Origin: Bigelowiella natans CCMP2755
Lineage: Eukaryota > Protista > Cercozoa
Length of the DNA stretch: 33,439 nt
Assembly (NCBI GenBank): GCA_000320545.1
Contig: ADNK01001022.1
Location: 1-33,439, forward strand
Direction: 5' to 3'
Part shown: piece by piece, positions 4,671 to 21,505 of the stretch
Position numbering within the stretch: position 1 is the first letter of the stretch
Layout of the letters: each line of letters starts with the position of its first letter
Notes under the pieces: model-generated
Told to the model about the DNA's origin: nothing
The model's input: the letters and a program-made list of their open reading frames with translations, nothing else
The model's database searches: none
Program-made: the position numbers and the translations under genes

Positions 4671-4719
4671 AATTGACTATCTGCGACGGAATTGATGGAT
4701 TGGAACCAACAATGTGTCG

Positions 4720-5420
4720 ATGAACTAGGTCTTGGGAATGCAACAAATCTGTCTAGCAATGGCATATGCACACATGATTACACAATAGCTATCTGCTACA
4801 CATCTAGACATCCTAGCATCGACAATATCTAGATATGCATGGTGTACGAGATCAATCTTGCATGCACTGCTTGTCATCTGCTAGCAACAAACAGCAACGG
4901 CATCTGGTTGCTGGATACTGCATGCATTATGAGCTACAGATGCCGTGATAGAACCAGTTTCTTTTTTACTTGTTGTGCATATATGAACTGCATGGCTGCT
5001 GCGTCTTTCGCATTACATGCTACATATTACTCAATACGATTGCTCTTGAGAGCTACACTACAGTGCCACACACTCAGCTGGCTCGCCTAAGCAAAGCCAG
5101 CCGCATTGATGCTTTGCATAGCTACATTAGGATGACCATCATTGAAAAGATTTAATCACTTCATTCATCCGTATAATGAAATACCACTACAATGCTAGAA
5201 TGGCTATAACTCGCCGCAGGTTGCTATGCTACTATGGCTATGGTTGCTCCAAAACAAGCTAAGTTTATAGTCATGACGATGAGCAGCCTGCATGTCCAAT
5301 ATTTTGTGCACTACTGGTACAACTGGTACAATGTGCGTTGCAATAACTAGATGATAATCGACGCTACATATACTTATTACATAGCTTCGACTTTATGAGT
5401 GCATGTACTAGGATATAGCA
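4720..5420. other. CTAG/GCTA/CATG/TGCA-rich island in convergent intergenic spacer 1
   Basis: About 9 CTAG by manual count (catctagacatcctagcatcgacaatatctagatatgcat at 4801-4840), plus dense gcta/tagc/gcat/atgc. No microsatellites. It lies between the stops at 4670 (+) and 5519 (-). Confidence 0.6.
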
Positions 5421-7253: not shown

Positions 7254-8440
7254 ATGGTTTTATTTCCAGTACGTTCCAACAGCTTCCCTATTGCCAAAAA
7301 TAGAGGTAGGGAATTCAGCCTAAAAAAAGGACCTGAGACAAGGACTCTATCATGTCTCTTCGCTCTATTCGAGTGAAAATATTCAGACTACCTGACTACC
7401 ACCTGGGTAAAATATTTTATCGGTGTAAGATTGCCCCTCATTTTTAACTATTCATTGACGATACGATACCAGTGCAGAACGAAGGAAAATACACGGAGAA
7501 AAGAGTAGGTGCCTGCACGTACTGGGATGGATCTTTCTCGGTGATATCAGCACACTCACTGTGCCTTTCCACCGCAGAAGACAGTCCTTCCCTTTCAACG
7601 AAGAAGAAGAAGAGAAGAAGCGGAGGGGATAAGGATAGGAGGAGGAGGAGCAAGGCCATCAAAGCACGGAGAACCCGATAAGAAGCAGTAGGGCTTCCTT
7701 CATTTTCGGCTACCAATCGTGTCTCAAAACGTGTAAGTCAGGACAAGAACAGGGAAACGATTACAAATAGAAAGATGATGGAAGCAACACACTTCGGCTT
7801 TTTGAATAGCCGATTAGAAGCGAAGGTAGCGAGGTGGAAACGTCGGGCTTTACAAAATGTTTCACCTTCTAGAAGGCCAAATACACAAGATTATCATCCT
7901 AAGAAATACGCAGAGAATCGAGGAGGGTTCCAAATTTTCTTAACATCACCAACGGGGTCCCAGAAATGTCTCGTCGGTAGTACATCATCTTCGGCTGAGC
8001 TAGGCCCGAGGAAATCAAGAAAACGGATTCGGGACGATGCGCAAACCGAGTGTAGTTCGGATGACGCGAGCTCCATAAAAACCAAGCTCCCCAATGCAAT
8101 GTAAATCATTCGCATCTTTCTTCAACAACACTCGTACCCTTTTGAATTATCTGAAGTTTTGTAATGTCTTCTTATCAGGCGTTTAGAGATCGCTTTCACG
8201 GAATATGATCAAGATGAGGATAAAAAAACTGAATTACCTCTGAAAGGCAATGTCGGCATATGCCTTCGGAGGCAGCTTGGGACCTTGGATCTTAGCATTC
8301 CAGTATTTTCCCCTGCGCAGCTTCCATCCCCGAGCCTCACCATATTATCAGAACATCCAACGAAGAAGCGGCGTTTTCAGTCGGGCAATGAATACTCAGC
8401 GGCTGAAGAACTTCATGATGATTTTGGCATCAAAGCTTAG
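7254..8440 (+). CDS. Hypothetical basic/low-complexity protein
   Basis: A phase-consistent GT-AG chain can be built: MVLFPVRSNSFPIAKNR|DYLTTTW|NEGKYTEKR|KTVLPFQRRRRREE...PDKK|HRLEAKVARWKRR...KLPNA|MRLEIAFTEYDQDED...PTKKRRFQ...DFGIKA* (TAG 8438-8440). It has NLS-like patches (RKSRKR, KKRR) but no recognised domain. The 5' exons are uncertain. Confidence 0.5.
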
Positions 8441-9029
8441 ATTTATACTATTACAAACAATGAATAAACAGAACCTACAACGAGATCTAAATTTCGTGTA
8501 CTGCAATAGCCATGCTTACTGAGGCATACCACTACGTTAAAGCTTTTACGATTTGCTGTAATTTCTACTTTTTAATTTAATCATAGTCAGCATCTGAACC
8601 TGAAGATGTGTTAGCAATTATCGCAGTGATGGTTTATTGTATTAGATTCGAATTTTTATTAATGCTTAACGCCCTCGCCACACAGAGAGTAATGCTTTGA
8701 TAGCAGAACAAAGAATGTAACTGGTTTACTAAAGTATCTCCGTTTCATATTGCTATGCTATAATCCTTCTTAGCGTCATTTTATCTACACGACGGTGCAT
8801 TATTTTGTCCTGCAGTTTTCATCTTATTTTTCCCCATTACTGTTATATTTATAGTGATAATGTACAGCCGAAATAATATGTTCTGGACGGACCATATATC
8901 AATTCCATGAATTATGTTGTGCATTACACAATTTTGGAAAACATGTAACTCAACAATTTGCTAATTGAATGCTCACCTCTTAATTAAATTAAAAATTTAT
9001 ATTAGCAGTGCTATGTAACTTATTTACCA

Positions 9030-9780
9030 ACTCGTCTAGACGTGCAATTATACGAGCCAAATGTACAATTTGTAGCTTGCAGTAGGATTGTTAAAGATTG
9101 TCGTTCGATCCCGCCGTGCTAGCATGCAGCAGAAGTCAGCATATGTGCACATCTAGACGTACGACATATATACCTTGCTAGATGGACAACGTGCTAGCGT
9201 GTCATTGGCGAAGCCTTGCTATCATTGTCGCTGCAATGCTAGAATGTCTATGGAACATGCTAGCATGGGATGCTAGCTAGAGCGATACATGCCGTATCCT
9301 AGCACCCTTTCTAGCTTTGTCACCCGCCATTGCTAGATTGATCTAGCTAGCTAGTGATGTCTAGCTAGCTAGAGCGTAGCAGCATTGCTTTAAGTAATGA
9401 TTACTAGATTACTCAAGTAGGCCTGCTGTCATCAATTGCTAGATTGCAAGCATCGCAAGTTGACAACAATCATCAGAATTCAAACGGACGCAGAACTGCG
9501 TGTTGACACTTGGTGACATCAGCACAGTCCCGCGCACAAAAGCTAAGCAGCTAGCGCTACCCCCAGCCCCCCAAAATGGTAGCGGACACAACGCTCATTT
9601 ACTTGTAAATCATTTGTTCGCATCGGCTCTACTTCGAGTTCTTCAAATCATAATTGCATGTCGAGCCAGCGAGTGATCTGTCACGCTCCCCTGATGGCAT
9701 ACTAGCACAGGCTAGCAGGCTAGCAGCTAGAGCAGGCCCACATCTAGGCATCAATCAAATAATGATGCGATCTAGCGATG
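9030..9780. other. CTAG-rich island in convergent intergenic spacer 2
   Basis: About 27 CTAG by manual count in ~750 bp (about 3 expected at uniform composition), including tandem runs atctagctagctagtgatgtctagctagctag (9341-9372). It lies between the stops at 8440 (+) and 9924 (-). Confidence 0.85.
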
Positions 9781-9923
9781 CACGTTTTTACGTAGTACTA
9801 ATGAGCAACAAGAACTTGCAGGATTCTATGGTGCGCAAATCTTTTTTGACTGATTGATTTCCAGCAATTCATTGCCACCCTACGCTGATGGAGCAGAGTT
9901 TATAATGCAATTAGCATGCACAG

Positions 9924-10209
9924 CTACAGCAAAGGCTCTACTCCGTTCCAATCAATTTCAGCTCCAGGCCATTTCGTCCGTATCACCTTTAAAGCAAAAG
10001 AGGACAAAGACATCATCATACGTTGCCTGTGATGATATATGGCTGTGTCTCGATGTTATATCAGCTATATCCTGATGCATGTAAGTTACGATACCCTATT
10101 GAGCGGAGGCACTAGATCATCTTCATTGTCTTCTGGGACATTTGCATTACCTGCTTGTTGTCCAAATGGTAAAGTAAATACGTTCAAAACCAACCCAAAG
10201 TTTGTGCGC

Positions 10210-10285
<76 letters not shown>

Positions 10286-10793
10286 AAATTATTATCACTT
10301 AAAAATGAAGACACATTTCAACACCTTCTCCAACTACGGTTTAGTAAGATATGTATTACATCGTACTGTCAAGCGAATTTCCTCATCCTGACGCCACAGC
10401 ATAGAAAGAAGAAGGAGAAGAACAACAACAACAACAAAAAGAAGAAGAAAACAACAAAAGATGAAGACGATCAGAAAACGACCGTGTTCATAATCTTCAG
10501 GATTTGAGTGATGGGTACGCTAAAGATTTGGAACCTGATTTGCTAGGCCGTCGTAGTACCATAAGTCGAATAAGTTGGAATCATTGATTAGCTTCGGAGA
10601 AAATAGCATAGAATAGTGACTTTCACTATAAACGATCCATATTGGATATCTGCAAGTAGCAACAACAACAATAGCCGCCATTAGATGATGACTGTCGGAA
10701 CATACTGGAGAATTCACCTGGGTGACTTTAGAGTCTTTCCCACTTCCACGTACTGATGATAACACGTTGATATATGTGTATGTATGTGTGTGG

Positions 10794-11395: not shown

Positions 11396-11839
11396 ATAGT
11401 TCTTGATGTAGGTGTTGCTTGGATATACATGTGACACTGCCTTCCCTAATGTACACAGATTGACGAGCTCCTGTGTTATTCGTTCGATGCATGATGAAGT
11501 TAATTTCTTGGCAACACCCAAAAAGACAACAAAAAAGGAAAGTAATAGCGAACAAAGCGCACCCTTATCGCAGCCATCACACACTAAACATCCTTCAGGT
11601 CAATACACACATGGCAGGCCATACATCTTGGCATCTAGAGAGGGGGGGGGGGAGGGGGGGGGGAGATAAATAAGTATACTTATGCCAACTGACAAACCTG
11701 TGCGCAATATCCATAATCAACTATAAGCCGATTTGAAGTCTCGTCCATTTCTTTGCGACATTCTTCGATTCCGTGCGACAGCTTCAGTAAGAGGTGTGGT
11801 AGTAATAGTAGTAGTAGTAGTAGTAGTAGTAGTGCCAGC

Positions 11840-11873
<34 letters not shown>

Positions 11874-12932
11874 AACAAGGAGAAAAAGCAAACATGAGCA
11901 ACATACCAGGAGCAAGACGAGAATAGGCATACTACTACTGATCTGCTGTTCTGATCTTACTACATACCATGATGGAATAGACAAGGAAGCACACTCCAGG
12001 ACCTGTTTCCTTCTGTTTGGACGGATGGTGATGATTATTCTCGGTGGGGGGTGGGGAATGATGAGGTATTGGAGAAAACTCAAAAATCATCCTCAGGAAG
12101 ACAATGATAATGCCCTTCCTCTGCTGCATGCATGCATGTATACGATTTTGATGACGTGGCAAAGTAGTTGTCTTTACCTGGAAACTGTGTAGGTTGGCTG
12201 CGATGAAGTCCCTCGTAGACGATCTTGATGTGAATGTAGCGGAGTAGGGCTGTGTAAGAGCACATAGGGGAGGGGGGGAGGGGGGGAGGGTTAATGAGGA
12301 TTAAGAGGAGGAGGAGAGTATATTGGAGAAAGAGAGACAGAGAGAGAAAGGGGAAAAAGAGAAAGAAGTCGCTTTCCTCCTCATACCAAAATCCAAATCA
12401 AGATGACACGTTTGATAGATCACAGAAACTCGTATCACTCATATTTAAGAGGAGCATACATCTGTGTGTGAATGGTTGCATCCAACTACTATATTGTAAG
12501 GTAATCTCTACCATGTTCAGATCTCTCCCCACGACGACGGTACACTTCCTTTCACTTCCAGCTCTGGCGACCATTATTACATACAACAAAGCTCTTTATA
12601 TTTATTATTATTATTTATATTATTATTAATTATTATTGTTACTATTATTATGATTATTATTCTCTTCAACGGCTTATGTCTCGTCGCATCCCTCACAAGG
12701 TCACGCGTATCACGTGTTACCTCCATAATATCTCTGTCAGCGCGGAAGTCAGCGCCGCGTTTAAGATGGAGCTGTTTGGGCCTGCTCATAGTAGTTCAGA
12801 TAAGATGAAGAATGATCTATCCAACAACCGTGTTTCCTTTCAGCATTTTTTATCGATCACGTTCGGTTACAACCTAGGAATTTCTTCCAGTCACTTTTTG
12901 TCTGAACACACACGCACGCACGCACAGATACC

Positions 12933-14692: not shown

Positions 14693-15503
14693 GGGGAGTG
14701 TTGCTTCTTCCCCACACAAATAAGAATCTTAGAGGCTGCTGTTTCGAAATGCTGTCTCCAGTGCGCAATGTTACTCACACATCATTCACAAACACGCACG
14801 CAGTTGCTCACTCTTCTGTACCATATCGATGATGTCATCATTGTCCATCCCGAGGTCCATATTATCAATCTACAAACAAATGATGCCTTAATAAACAGGT
14901 TGTTGCATCTCAGACCCGCTCATAAGTTCATTCACCACCTCCTCGATGAGCATTTCTTCCTCCTCCCCTTCTTCGCTCCTGCACGCTGATGCATTCTTCT
15001 TCTTTGGGCTGCTGGGTTTCTTCTTCATCATCGATTCTCTCTCTGCTCCCCTCCTCGACCCTGCTGCTCCTCTATCTTCGCCTCCTTTTCTTCTGCTACC
15101 GAACAACCTATTTTGTCCTTCTCTGGAGTTTGGTCTATTGCTGCCGACACCTTTTGTCCGCACAGTCGTCGTCATCGTATTCGTCGTTTTCGTCTCAAGA
15201 GAACTACTTCCGTAAGAAAGGAAATTATTCCGCACTGATGAGTTTTTACTTCGCCCTTCTCCTCCTCCTCTTAGACGCGCTACTGAAGCTGATGATGATG
15301 AATTGGTATTCCTACGAGGGTTGGAAGAAGTAGCTGCTGTGGGTGAAATAGGTGGGGAGGCGGCAGAGGAATTATCGCCGGGTTTCGAAGCTGTCTTTCT
15401 TTGCGAGGATTGAGAAGCTGCTGCTAGAGCTCTCTTCTTTTGTTGGTAGTCAACGAGAGTCTAGGGTAGTAGTAGTAGTGGGATAATAGAGGAGCATAAG
15501 TAC

Positions 15504-15539
<36 letters not shown>

Positions 15540-16511
15540 CAGTAGCAACAAAAAGATGATAACATTCACAGAGGAGATTTTCTCAGTGCGGTGTTCGGTT
15601 GAAGCGGGCAATGTTATCGGCAGGAGGGTGATCTACGGACGATACGCGACATCCTCGAGATGAAACAGTGCATACACATCGATGTACACTCACAGCCTTA
15701 CATGCTGTATGCGTGCGTACTTGTGGACATAATATCTAACCTCAAGAACCGATCTCTTGATGCCTTGTTGTCGCTGCTTTTGAACTAGCTTTAACATACC
15801 CAACTCACGGGAGATGTCCCCGCTGCCCAATACATCCACGGTGTCAAACACGACAAGCACACAATATTGAACTGTAGCAATAATGCAATAATTCACCTGT
15901 TGTCGTTACATTCCAGAAAAGAGCTAAGGGTTTTCTTAAAGTTACTGCGCCGGAGATAATTTCGTATGAGCGCATATGCCGTCTTCGTGGAGCCCTGGTT
16001 CAATTTGTTATTATCCGGCATCGGAGCATTAGATTGCAACGAGGAGCGCATACCCAAGAGTACAAAATCATACCTCAACCGAAAAAGTAGCTTGCTTTGA
16101 AGTCTTTCTTTTCTTTCGGAAGAGTTGTAAGCCTATCAGCACTTCCAACAAAGACACGTTTCCTCCACTAGCCTTAGCTTTCTTTTATCATTCATGGAGT
16201 GCAATGACGATCAGTTAGATAAAGTCTGGGAACATAAAATATAGCCCAATGACCGCTACTACCTTGAAGTGTTTCACAATTCCAAGTGATCGTGCAAGTC
16301 CAGCGCGTGTGCAGCTTTCGGGTTTTTTGCTGCCATATTTTGTGGTAAAGTAAGGAATCGTCGCCACTGCAAAAGTTAAGTTATGCAGATACCCTAGATC
16401 TCGAAGGAGGTGATCATGGCTCGTCTTGAAGTCCTTTTGGAGGAAAAACTCGCGGGTCAAATGCAGAGCTATGCTTCCTGCTGCTGATGCTGGGGATGAG
16501 TCTTCAGACAT
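9924..16511 (-). CDS. MINDY4: MINDY-family (FAM188) deubiquitinase, MINDY4/FAM188B-like
   Basis: About 25 hand-spliced exons give LKTLLFG...EEW|KYQGFYF...LGFGLVQRK|[14 protein letters not shown]|VRFLLF (catalytic Cys motif near 13430), [16 protein letters not shown]|[16 protein letters not shown]|[11 protein letters not shown]|[17 protein letters not shown] (catalytic His), YYDGLANQ|DEEIRLT and DDLVPPLNR|[20 protein letters not shown] (TAG 9924-9926). The LisH-like N-terminus and long disordered linker are as in MINDY4. Confidence 0.9.
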
Positions 16512-17089: not shown

Positions 17090-17894
17090 ATGATGCCAAG
17101 GAGTAATGGACAAAAACGGATACTAAGCCATCCGGTGACTTCAAATCGTCTCACCAAGAAGACAAGACGCAGTAGTTGCAATGCGTCAAGCTCAAGGGGG
17201 GGAAAACGTGGGAAGAGAGATTGTGAAATCAACTGGGAGAAGACGGTTGCTGGAATTCCTATAAAAACAAGTGATCAGTTTGTGAATTTCATTCATGAAA
17301 CCATGAAACTGGAATTGTCGCAATCCTTTTTCGAACAGCTTCAACTCCACAATGTCAGGTATCAAATGCCGAGTCTGCATCTAAAATATCTTTCACTATG
17401 AATATCATCGTTATTGCCATCAGTATAATCATCATCACACCACATTTAGTATTATTATTATTATTATTATCATTATTATTATTATTTTATTACCACTATT
17501 TTCTTCATTTCACACCTTACTAGCTTACTGACTGAGCAGCCTCTTCACAATCTACTCGTTATCAGCACAAACTTCTTCATCTTCCCACTATTTTCTGGTG
17601 ATACTAATTGTTTTAACTATTTTTTGCCAAATGACTAATTTTCTTCAAGAAAATATATGATGGAGGAGCTGAACATTGAAGTAAAATCCCTTAAAGACGG
17701 CTTGAAACAAATCAGAGACGTTGACATTAAGACAGAGATGGAAAATAAAATCTGCAGAGGCCATGTCTTTCTTCATCTCTACGGCCAAGACGGCAAGCTA
17801 GCACAGAAGCCCTTCGGCGAAATTCCTCTGAGGTGGGGAGCATTTGAATTCGCATGCTTCACGTCTTCATCCGTCTGTAGAACGGATACTAAGA

Positions 17895-17972
<78 letters not shown>

Positions 17973-20742
17973 TTATTTATTTATTTTATGTCTTACAAAG
18001 AGCCTGCTCAAGACTAAGATCATTCGAGTTCCCTGTCTGTACATCAGTCCGATAATATATTTTATAAACCTTATGTGGTACTCAGCCTCGATAGCGGCAG
18101 TGCTCTGGACTCTCGTAGCTTCACCGTCTCATTCAGCAAAAGCGGTCTATGGGCCTTTTTTATGACGTTCCTCAACAAGAAATTCAGTGCAATCGGAGGG
18201 GTCCCAATCCAACTTGATGGCTGCCTCAGATTTGGGTGGTGCAAGTCATTATACAACCGTCGCCCCGCCGTTTGTTTTGAAATCTCCTATCACTTTTCAG
18301 TTGCAGCGAGAGTAATTTCCCTTTCAAGATTTGCGTGCGACGACCACCTTCTATGGAGAATAACAGCTCGGTCCACCTCAAAGAAAGGGGGATAGAACAC
18401 AGATTTGGCCACGTGGGAGTCAAATTTGAGATCTCTAAGGCTGAGGACTTGTTGTCGCTCCATTCGTTTTTGGAAAGGTCCAAGTGGCTGCCAGAAGGTA
18501 TATGGAGAGCATGTTGCTTGCTCTTGATGGATTGGAGAAAGCAGGTGGATCCTCCGCTGACCGCCATTGTTCCTGCAAGTTCTACTACTCCCATCAAAGA
18601 AACATCCCGAGTATGTGATCAGCAGCCGCCGCTAACACTTTATTTAACACCCCCACCGTCGACTTTTGCGTCAAGGATTCTATGTTTCTTTTCGAGTTAT
18701 ACAGCATGTCGTGTTATTATCACCATCATCATCATCATCATCATCTTCATCGTCGTCGTCATCATTGTGCAGGTGATACTCCAAGCAGTCCGCGACCGGT
18801 TGAAATTAGTGGATTTTAGGGAGAAGTACTTTGATGGCGCCCGAAAGAAGGAATTTCTAAAGTTGTAACAGATTTTAATACTATGCGTAGAAAGTAGCAG
18901 CGAATCGATATTGCATAACCAAGAGGGCTAATATGTAGGCTTTTTGAAGAGGAGGATGGCGGTGATGAAAGAACAAAATCAGACATCAAGGCGTACTGTC
19001 GCTTCTACGTGAAAACCATGAAGCTTCATCCAAAAATTGACTACGACGTGGAAGGTGGTGCCACTTTGTTAATAATTAAGAGTATACAAGATAAGATCAC
19101 GTGGTTGTGAGATCTGGTTGTTCGGTACGACTCAGGATGCTTTAATGAAGGACAAAGGGAGGAGGAAGGGGAGGAAGAGAAGGAGGAGGAGGTAAAAACC
19201 CAGCTCAAGCCTCCGACTGCTCTCAAACATATGAGCAGTGCTTTGTGCGGCAACGAAAATGATGCAGAGGGTGGGTGTGAGGACGAGGACGAGAAAAAGG
19301 GGGGCGGGGAGAAGGAGCTTCCCAGCAGCAGCAGCAGCAGCAGCAGCAGCTCCAAACGAACCCATCGTCCGCAGTCGTCGCCGCCGCAACAGCAACAACG
19401 TGATCAAAAGAGGGAACGACAAAGAAGACGATCCACAAGACAGAGCTCAGGCAGCTCGAAGATGATCAAGTGCAAAAACATGAAATTCGAGGATGAGGGG
19501 AAGAAGCTTGTTGTCTCGGGGTTTCCTCTCTCGGCCTGGGAGTTGAAACACCCGTCGCTCGGGAAAGTGCAGCATATCAAGATCGAAGCGGACTTGTCTG
19601 GCGAAGAGGAATTCGGTTGCATGGAGACGTTGTTGAGTAAGTTCTATACTGTTAATTCTCGTAACCTCAAAGTCCTAGATCTAAGTTCCACAAAGCTTTC
19701 AAAGATGCCCCCACTTATAAGGTGCGGAAAGCTTGAGGACCTGAATCTCTCGTTCAACAACCTTACTATCATCAATAAAGAGCGTTTGCCAAGGAGCATT
19801 GTAAGTCTCGATGTGTCGGAAAATCGATTGAAATCGTCTAAAGGTCTGCGGATCAACAGCAAGATCAAAATCAGATTTTTCCGCAACCAGCAGCCTGCGA
19901 GTATAGAAATAAAACCTTCTCCTCTTCACGGGCTCGGTGCTTTTACGACAGTGGATCTTCCTGCAGACACGGACCTTGGGGTCATCAAAGGAGATTATAC
20001 CTTTCCTCATCTGTCTGGTGCAGACTCCTTGCACTCATTCTATGTGCTCCGTAAGAAGTGGGCAAGGGTGGAAGGCCAATCGCCCATGTTGAAGGTGGAA
20101 TGCGGGAATCTGCAAGACGCATCGTGGCACCGCTTCATCAACGGCTGCAGGAAAAAAAAGGAAAAGCCTCTCGTCAACGTGCGCGCGCGCCTTTACAAAT
20201 CAAAAAACAGGGGGCGCAAGGAAATTCATGTCTTCACAACTCGAGAAATCGAGGCAGGGACCGAGCTGGTAATGGAGTATGTAAAAGACTACTGGAAGCA
20301 AACGAAAGAAGATGCACTCGGGGATGTATGGGAGGAGATGGATTTCCCAGAGACGGTTAACATGGACCTGTTCAAAAAAAAGAAGGGGGAGAGCAGCCAG
20401 CATATTCTTTACGATATGGATGATAATGAGCCTTATGGCTGGAGGATCTTCGACTTATATCAACCCTCAAAACGAAAGAACAAGGAAAACTGCTGGGAGG
20501 GGAAGTTGAAACAACGCAACACAGGCAAGCCCAGTTCGAATGGCGGGTACAAAGTGGAACGTTTTTTTAAAGTTGGAGAGGATCTTTGCAAAGAAACGTA
20601 TTTTGACAACTGGATTCTGATAAAAGAAAAGGAGGGGAATAAAAGGCAGCAGCAGAGAAATCAGGGCCCGGGGTCATCCGCCATTCCAAATGCAACAAGC
20701 AATTTAAGAGATTCCCCCGCTGAAAGGAAACCAGCAGAATAG
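17090..20742 (+). CDS. Multi-domain protein: unknown N-terminal region + leucine-rich repeats + SET (PR-like) domain; putative lysine methyltransferase
   Basis: A phase-consistent exon chain from ATG 17090 joins a 1.6 kb final exon, 19136-20742. LRRs at ~19666-19870: LKVLDLSSTKLSKMP, LEDLNLSFNNLTII, IVSLDVSENRL. SET at ~19903-20298: IEIKPSPLHGLGAFTTVDLPADTDLG...SWHRFINGCR...NVRA...IHVFTTREIEAGTELVMEYVKDYW. Linkage of the upstream exons is less certain than the last exon. Confidence 0.8.
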
Positions 20743-20759
20743 CTAAGACGTGTGCCAAT

Positions 20760-21505
20760 GTCTAGATACGCATGAGCAAGACATTGTGGTAGAGAAAGGA
20801 TCCCACCCCTGATGTTTGAGATATTTAGCTATTTGCTTACCTTTTGGATTGTACAAAGTAAACCTAGAGATTGCTCTGTGTAGCTGTTTTTGAGGTGTCT
20901 AGGTGTGCTACTTTCGTGCCTCACGTCTAGAAGTAGCCTATGCATTCTGTGAATTTTGGCGACAGCAACATCTTTTAGATCTGGGTATTGCACTCATCGC
21001 ATCTAGCTGCAGTCTTGAAAGTGACAATTGAAAAAATATATACATTGAATTACACCTAGCTAGCTAGTCATAGTCTTGGTAGTGAGACATGCTTGCCAGC
21101 ATGTCTAGCTAGATGTGCAACATGTCATCTAGATGTGCTGGCGCAACGCACACTTTGCTAAGTTTAGCCCTTCCTTGCATGCATCTGCTACATGTCTAGA
21201 GATGTGCAGCACAGTGTCGTAAACAACCACCACAGCGCCAAAACGCTGCTAGGCTGAGCTAGCTGCTAGCTGGGCGCACTTCCACTCATGACTTCTACAA
21301 CACACTCTAGCACTGCATGCTGCGCATAAACGACACCCCAAAACGGATCTAATGAGCATGCTCTAATAAATGCGATCTCGTATGAATGATCTCTAAATCC
21401 TGAGACATGCTAGGGCACACACGCACATTCGGTGACTAGATTCGCATGATCAAGTGTGCAACCGGCAGGCGCAACACTATGGTAACTACTACACAGCTAG
21501 ACAGG
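20760..21505. other. CTAG-rich island in convergent intergenic spacer 3
   Basis: About 19 CTAG by manual count in ~750 bp (cctagctagctag at 21055-21067, catgtctagctagatg at 21100-21115, tgctaggctgagctagctgctagc at 21247-21270). It lies between the stops at 20742 (+) and 21698 (-). Confidence 0.82.

Follow-up and report, generated by a model that had tools for sequence, protein, structure and literature searches.

What fills the gap between two genes that meet tail to tail, and how can such a gap come to be crowded with a single short palindrome? The question is raised by a 33,439-nt window of DNA from the chlorarachniophyte alga Bigelowiella natans (the window being the whole stretch analysed, whose positions are used as coordinates throughout), in which the palindrome CTAG is concentrated in an island at 9030-9780. 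An original prediction, made from the sequence alone, took the island for a cis element placed where opposing polymerases meet, consisting either of clustered sites that bind a factor for termination or insulation or of targets for a base modification. The structure that this prediction missed is a set of 4-bp direct repeats around the CTAGs. The island grew through repeated insertions of 8 bp, each made up of CTAG and a copy of the 4-bp target, and insertions of the same type, which we call scars, are found in a second chlorarachniophyte genus, Amorphochlora.

Direct repeats around the CTAGs of the island

The 751 bp of the island contain 27 CTAGs where 2.9 are expected from base composition, in agreement with the roughly ninefold excess that had been counted by hand. 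With 200 sequences simulated from a first-order Markov model of the window as the null for CTAG density and for flank matches, the richest 751-bp stretch held a mean of 8.4 and a maximum of 12 CTAGs. The window as a whole is slightly poor in CTAG (102 observed versus ∼130 expected). The runs of (CTAG)2-3 and the TGCTAG and ATCTAG contexts described for the island are present, GC content is moderate (0.47), CpG is retained (observed/expected 0.82) and no open reading frame (ORF) exceeds 67 amino acids, all as had been stated. Among the tetramers said to accompany CTAG, AGCT is enriched 3.3-fold, mostly through CTAGCTAG, whereas CATG (1.5-fold) and TGCA (1.9-fold) are barely raised; GCTAGC is enriched 52-fold, and this excess and that of AGCT are by-products of the CTAG contexts. 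The claim that the island is not a tandem repeat holds apart from one array, CAGGCTAG ×3 at 9702-9730, which is the only one detected by Tandem Repeats Finder (TRF). A search of 8500-10300 for structured RNA gave no Rfam match at E≤0.1, and comparison of the window with phage records gave no similarity.

Exact 4-bp direct repeats flank 21 of the 102 CTAGs in the window (N4-CTAG-N4), and 11 more are flanked by repeats with one mismatch. Exact flanks of 3, 5 and 6 bp occur in 1, 1 and 0 cases, respectively, and the simulated sequences contained a mean of 0.5 exact N4-CTAG-N4 units with a maximum of 3. When every 4-nt core was tested for exact 4-bp flanks, and flanks with fewer than three different bases were dropped (a filter that removes most microsatellites), CTAG was the top core. 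Since the exact repeats around CTAG have this one length, the island must have grown by repeated 8-bp insertions. A (CTAG)3 run arises when the tetramer that is duplicated happens to be CTAG, and nested units of the form N4-(CTAG)3-N4 occur four times, including one in the island (Table 1), in the 104 kb of B. natans sequence that was sampled for scars and elements and that represents ∼0.1% of the genome read as sequence. Iterative removal of exact scars from the island took out 12 units (96 bp) and left 13 CTAGs, which are older or disrupted. CATG ranks second among the cores that have exact 4-bp flanks, with some cases arising from homologous copies of a long terminal repeat (LTR) and the remainder perhaps belonging to another, rarer kind of scar, and (CATG)3 runs occur four times in the 104 kb (window 12127-12138; L001 1334-1345 and 1675-1686; L004 3029-3040).

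Genome-wide counts in B. natans, set against a reversed-pattern control, show how widespread the scars are. CATG-CTAG-CATG is present 3828 times (7 in the control), AATG-CTAG-AATG 1117 times (6) and (CTAG)3 5555 times (123), counts which put the total number of scars in the tens of thousands. The 41 exact scars of the 104-kb sample reveal a degenerate target. The duplicated tetramer fits the consensus C-W-W-G (C is first in 23 and G last in 26 of the 41), it is weakly preceded by C and weakly followed by G, and in 9 scars it is CTAG itself. Dimeric transposases and integrases typically have target consensuses of this kind, both palindromic and degenerate.

Longer variants accompany the main form. 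The pattern CATG-CT...AG-CATG with 1-14 bases between its halves occurs 1114 times genome-wide versus 48 times in the control. Among the first 50 matches listed, the tandem CATG-CTAG-CATG-CTAG-CATG was the commonest longer form (7), with CATG-CTATAG-CATG found 4 times and CATG-CTAGCTAG-CATG and CATG-(CTAG)3-CATG twice each; CATG-CTAGTAG-CATG is a further recurrent minor form. The minor forms longer by 2, 3 and 4 bases are all partial repeats of CTAG, a hint that element ends starting with CTA(G) were joined with or without overlap, and they could equally have arisen by later small tandem duplications.

Table 1. Positions of the CTAG islands, individual scars and neighbouring features in the 33,439-nt window
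Feature	Position	Strand	Basis
CTAG island, 27 CTAG, largely N4-CTAG-N4 scars	9030..9780	.	Counts, flank scan, simulations
Second CTAG island, 19 CTAG, 4 exact scars	20750..21500	.	Counts, flank scan
Weak third island, 6 CTAG, 3 exact scars	4700..5100	.	Counts, flank scan
Exact scar CGTG-CTAG-CGTG	9190..9201	.	Flank scan
Exact scar AATG-CTAG-AATG	9235..9246	.	Flank scan
Exact scar CATG-CTAG-CATG	9256..9267	.	Flank scan, genome count of the 12-mer
Exact scar CTTT-CTAG-CTTT	9307..9318	.	Flank scan
Exact scar ATTG-CTAG-ATTG	9329..9340	.	Flank scan
Nested scar TGAT-(CTAG)3-TGAT, second insertion into the CTAG of an earlier scar	9339..9358	.	
(CTAG)3 run, formally CTAG-CTAG-CTAG; outer flanks now mismatched	9361..9372	.	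Flank scan
Exact scar ATTA-CTAG-ATTA	9400..9411	.	Flank scan
Exact scar ATTG-CTAG-ATTG, adjoining the LTR fragment	9435..9446	.	Flank scan
CAGG-CTAG-CAGG-CTAG-CAG(C)-CTAG, repeated insertions into a duplicated target; 8-bp array by TRF	9702..9730	.	
Exact scar CGAT-CTAG-CGAT	9768..9779	.	Flank scan
Isolated exact scar AATG-CTAG-AATG	5191..5202	.	Flank scan
Isolated exact scar CTTA-CTAG-CTTA	17516..17527	.	Flank scan
119-bp fragment, 3′ part of the 417-bp LTR of a dispersed, expressed LTR retrotransposon	9445..9563	+	Genome matches, reads
Left gene transcript, 3′ part	8182..9166	+	RNA reads, plus-strand ORFs
Right gene transcript, 3′ part	9758..10151	-	RNA reads

Setting of the scars in two genera

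Transcription around the island was followed with raw RNA reads (run X21). On the plus strand, read depth is 20× at 8773-8969, 5× at 8970-9166 and 0.06× at 9167-9363, and on the minus strand it is 6.2× at 9758-9954 and 0.44× at 9561-9757. An intron at ∼9985-10092 in the right gene has GT..AG polarity on the minus strand. The strands of the reads and the polarity of the intron establish that the flanking genes converge and that the island core (∼9170-9750) is untranscribed, with only the left edge of the island lying within a 3′ untranslated region. A spike of RNA depth at 9364-9560 is due to multi-mapping from a repeat. Both transcripts end at the island edges; such ends are equally expected, however, from a mere build-up of scars in DNA that is not transcribed.

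The repeat in question is the LTR fragment listed in Table 1, which has at least 40 matches in the genome at 77-94% identity, many of them paired 5.8-6.1 kb apart, on numerous contigs; the two members of one pair (L013 1211-1627 and L014 1211-1627; G000 C873) are 99.3% identical. The full 417-bp LTR starts with TGTCAGCGG and encloses an array of GAATCTTCGAGAAGCTTC-like inverted repeats, and the family is expressed, since RNA reads from either strand accumulate over the LTR. The fragment coincides exactly with the CTAG-free gap of the island and contains no scar, versus ∼5 CTAGs expected at the density of its surroundings. It either arrived after most of the scarring or is refractory to it. The rest of the island is unique, with no alignment anywhere else in the genome. 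As to whether the islands might be decayed copies of a transposon, a dispersed repeat is thus matched by this fragment alone, and the islands neither align to each other nor share any conserved sequence beyond CTAG. In the region of the right-hand gene, the depth of DNA contigs at 11531-11727 reaches ∼350-2700 compared with 25-60 nearby in three runs, with many loose ends at 11637-11668, which points to another dispersed repeat.

The original prediction placed islands in all convergent spacers of the window and in none of the divergent ones. No island lies in the inferred divergent spacers, and convergence at 9030-9780 is demonstrated by the RNA reads, whereas at the other two islands it is given by ORF orientation alone. 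A candidate fourth convergent junction at 15333-16215, also assigned by ORF orientation, has no island (5 CTAGs in 15251-16500). The second island begins directly past the stop codon of a SET-domain ORF (19231-20742), for which a homolog search returned none.

The same arrangement recurs in Amorphochlora amoebiformis, of which seven loci totalling 145 kb (assembly GCA_054601695.1) were analysed using the public gene calls. These loci were reached through annotated homologs of a B. natans Harbinger-type ORF. CTAG is again the top core and CTAG islands are present, and here the core lies between exact direct repeats of 5 bp, which makes each insertion 9 bp long, with 51 exact N5-CTAG-N5 scars in the 145 kb (in 29 the flanks contain three or more different bases) and a minority of N4 scars. 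Convergent spacers (19.6 kb) hold 8.4 CTAG per kb and 32 exact N5 scars, tandem spacers (11 kb) 3.8 per kb and 7 scars, gene bodies with introns included (89 kb) 1.59 per kb and 9 scars, and divergent spacers (6.6 kb) 1.36 per kb and none, where it should be borne in mind that all of the loci were chosen through transposase genes and that some 'convergent' partners are transposon genes. The convergent bias is therefore seen with independent gene calls as well. Islands between host-gene pairs are found at L019 19266-20175 (30 CTAGs), L020 15600-18305 and L043 17254-17838, while the convergent spacer at L044 16265-17127 has two CTAGs and no island. The long, AT-rich introns carry hardly any scars; this speaks for targeting, or for the loss of scars from transcribed DNA, and against mere tolerance. 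Scars also occur inside non-coding parts of transposons (L018 ∼12030-12190 and L020 7931-7953), and Harbinger elements sit in the same gene-tail spacers as the scars.

Several other features of the Amorphochlora loci (L018-L020 and L043-L046) were recorded. Their introns and spacers are full of long (TA)n and (TG)n tracts (for example, L019 17300-18000), and at least one locus that starts at a contig end carries ∼100 CCCTAA telomere-type repeats. An uncalled open frame of 1257 amino acids at L044 3886-7659 is of the Ty1/copia type, with RVT_2, rve and retroviral SH3-like domains; the output of an LTR search around it was dominated by (TA)n.

Origin of the scars

We consider it likely that the island is an accumulation of excision scars left by a cut-and-paste element, which feeds on its own products at CWWG targets and acts in untranscribed spacers. 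By analogy, a constant palindrome set between two copies of an arbitrary sequence of fixed length would be an excision product of the Tc1/mariner type. A DDE-type element with termini CTA(G)...(C)TAG would integrate by way of cuts staggered by 4 bp (by 5 bp in Amorphochlora), thereby creating the target-site duplication, and on excision would leave terminal nucleotides that are rejoined as the palindrome CTAG. The rejoining could proceed either by pairing of two CTA 3′ overhangs through TA or by ligation of complementary 4-nt CTAG ends, and the uniformity of the junctions favours complementary ends. As the scar core is also the best target, each scar would provide a new preferred site, and this positive feedback could give rise to islands. 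A preference for CTAG as target would account for the clustering and for the (CTAG)3 and CATG-CTAG-CATG-CTAG-CATG forms. The position of islands behind gene 3′ ends, above all convergent ones, would reflect either an enzyme directed to untranscribed DNA or the removal of insertions elsewhere by selection or repair; other mobile DNA also enters these spacers, namely the LTR fragment in B. natans and the Harbinger elements in Amorphochlora. The element itself is presumably of low copy number and short-lived at each site, or else extinct, unassembled or a member of a family without a Pfam model. Fast excision, with few copies at any moment, would account for the lack of a visible family of copies.

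A number of results weigh against this origin. No element with inverted termini of the CT/CTA...AG/TAG type and a 4-5-bp duplication was found in the 104 kb of B. natans or the 145 kb of Amorphochlora, where the only matches were due to chance or to nested scars. Genome-wide, the sequences listed after CATGCTAG where the right copy is not CATG contained no recurrent element end but only one-mismatch scars and CTAGTAG variants, and recurrent words after CTAG came only from homologous copies of the LTR element. The scar is far more uniform than typical products of end joining. Three other samples gave DNA contigs that do not differ from the window anywhere in the island, with no sign of ongoing scar activity, although these samples are probably of the same strain and the test is a weak one. 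Furthermore, the cut-and-paste families that Pfam detects in the B. natans genome, Harbinger-type DDE_Tnp_4 (15 matches), hAT (3) and pogo-like DDE_1 (2), produce duplications of 3, 8 and 2 bp (TA), respectively, and not of 4 or 5 bp, and the terminal inverted repeats of the Amorphochlora Harbingers, which are inserted in (TA)n, read AGACCTTGTTAA... rather than CTAG.

The Pfam search of the B. natans genome gave no DDE_3, MULE, piggyBac, mariner, KDZ, RAG1/Transib, CACTA or Merlin. The two pogo-like matches (C2661:202080-202535 and C2845:6046-6501 in G000) have equal scores and lie in open frames of 600 and 543 amino acids, and may be copies of one young element. The three matches to the hAT dimerisation domain (C2149:11338-11538, C2351:208686-208913 and C2036:88857-89018 in G000), in open frames of 304-662 amino acids, are either transposons or domesticated genes. 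The Harbingers of Amorphochlora are genuine two-gene elements, the Myb-like partner being seen in L047, and the family looks recently active there, two copies on different contigs (L044 8424-11311 and L045 8424-11311) with termini AGACCTTGTTAAA being 99.9% identical over 2888 bp. No inverted repeats flank the Harbinger ORFs of B. natans within 1.5 kb, these ORFs show no mutual similarity at the DNA level, and two environmental Harbinger contigs (L047 and L048) contain no spacers and no scars. The Harbinger-type ORF L007 898-2340 of B. natans shares 92% identity with a protein, P0001, whose NCBI title is 'MAG: transposase family protein, partial [Myxococcota bacterium]', and the metagenome bin from which this protein derives probably contains chlorarachniophyte DNA.

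Harbinger was also considered as the agent. The family is present in both chlorarachniophytes and occupies the gene-tail spacers of Amorphochlora, and the extended target of PIF/Harbinger elements resembles C-TWA-G. It was rejected and is a very unlikely source, given its AGACCTTGTTAA ends and insertion in (TA)n in Amorphochlora and the 4-5-bp duplications of the scars. The hallmarks of PIF/Harbinger elements are a 3-bp TWA duplication and termini of the GGCC/AGACCTTGTT type, neither of which is displayed by the scars.

The closest analogue among known systems is provided by the footprints of Tc1/mariner elements such as Tc1 and Sleeping Beauty, in which, as in the scars, both copies of the duplication are kept around a short palindromic remnant. 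The likeness extends to the minor longer variants (CTATAG, CTAGTAG and CTAGCTAG) beside the main form. However, the duplication is of 4 bp (5 bp in Amorphochlora) and nearly arbitrary rather than TA, the scars are far more uniform, and their tens of thousands of copies are accompanied by no resident element that could be found, the only relatives being the two pogo-like matches. With piggyBac and PiggyMac the scars would share a self-complementary 4-nt end (TTAA in those systems, CTAG here), which would explain the uniformity of the junctions, but piggyBac restores a single TTAA and leaves no duplication, and a transposase of this type was not detected in B. natans. Since no resident element with matching ends and duplication was found in the data searched, membership in a known transposon superfamily cannot be claimed.

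An enzyme of the host could in principle do without a free transposon. If a domesticated nuclease or transposase, retained by all chlorarachniophytes, wrote CTAG into gene-tail spacers, where the islands might act as boundaries, terminators or spacer-lengtheners, this would be in keeping with the same scar type and location in two genera that differ in duplication length, with the lack of a multicopy element in the scans, with the single-copy-looking Harbinger-, hAT- and pogo-like ORFs that have long open frames, and with the termination of transcripts at the island edges. We nevertheless regard such an origin as improbable. In the absence of element ends the constant CTAG has no source, and no candidate enzyme is tied to the scars; moreover, scars lie inside non-coding transposon parts too, as a non-selective process predicts.

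Somewhat less probable again is the view closest to the original prediction, in which the CTAG clusters are selected cis elements at zones of polymerase collision, serving as termination- or insulator-factor sites or as putative targets of base modification. Both genera do show the association with convergent spacers, and the core of the island is not transcribed. However, the CTAGs are the cores of 8-bp insertions that duplicate four arbitrary bases, so that their density has a mutational explanation; nothing else is conserved between islands, and CTAG density varies widely among convergent spacers, one of which has only two. A purpose-built terminator or DNA-modification element therefore does not appear to be supported. 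Base J of kinetoplastids, with which the islands had been compared, likewise marks sites where opposing transcription units meet, but it is a chemical modification with a demonstrated role in termination, whereas the CTAG mark is an inserted sequence of mutational origin.

Repair of staggered breaks made by a host enzyme under torsional stress, with no transposition involved, seems very improbable. Topoisomerase II cuts with a 4-bp stagger, fill-in of its breaks gives duplications of 2-4 bp, and positive supercoiling accumulates in convergent spacers; both the N4 duplication and the link to convergent transcription would thereby be matched. Yet fill-in yields N4N4 with no insert, whereas a constant CTAG separates the two copies here, and the CWWG preference resembles the target consensus of a transposase. 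The predominant 5-bp stagger of Amorphochlora, which type IIA topoisomerases are not known to make, excludes topoisomerase II as a common cause. Least credible of all is replication slippage or microsatellite-like growth of 8-bp units, which the CAGGCTAG ×3 array and the common tandem CATG-CTAG repeats might suggest and by which (CTAG)n could grow, but which cannot place CTAG beside arbitrary tetramers, most scars being single units that each have a different N4. A metagenome scan for the tandem form, of little information in itself, gave only 22 isolated cases, on unrelated contigs with no further scars nearby. Break repair and slippage are both largely excluded once the inserted CTAG, the N4 diversity and the 5-bp variant are considered together, and excision of a cut-and-paste element is the explanation that we favour.

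Implications of the scar record

No published description of the CTAG scar was found. In the 2025 genome paper on Amorphochlora (PMC12730881) the string 'palindrom' was absent and 'intergenic' occurred once, in an unrelated context; CTAG itself was not looked for there. The scar is thus, apparently, a striking mutational mark that has gone undescribed, and what is new here is its extension to a second genus and the explanation of islands by target feedback. The case also carries a warning, as palindrome-rich 'boundary elements' deduced from nothing more than sequence can be mutational scars.

More tentatively, it is possible that chlorarachniophytes harbour a long-lived cut-and-paste system, either a new transposon superfamily or a domesticated enzyme, with CTA(G) termini and a 4-5-bp stagger, that is aimed at untranscribed gene-tail spacers and excises with such efficiency that it is hardly ever caught in place. 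Such a system would be a main builder of intergenic DNA, having left identical scars by the tens of thousands in two genera or more. If the excision origin is correct, the scars would form a clean, countable record, with a fixed core and a duplication length fixed for each genus, from which the rate of the process and its choice of targets could be measured and spacers dated. They would also open the way to studying what steers a nuclease or mobile element to the places where convergent transcription stops, and would offer a lead to the enzyme that makes these near-seamless excisions. Much of the intergenic DNA across an entire algal lineage would then owe its shape to a single mutational process.

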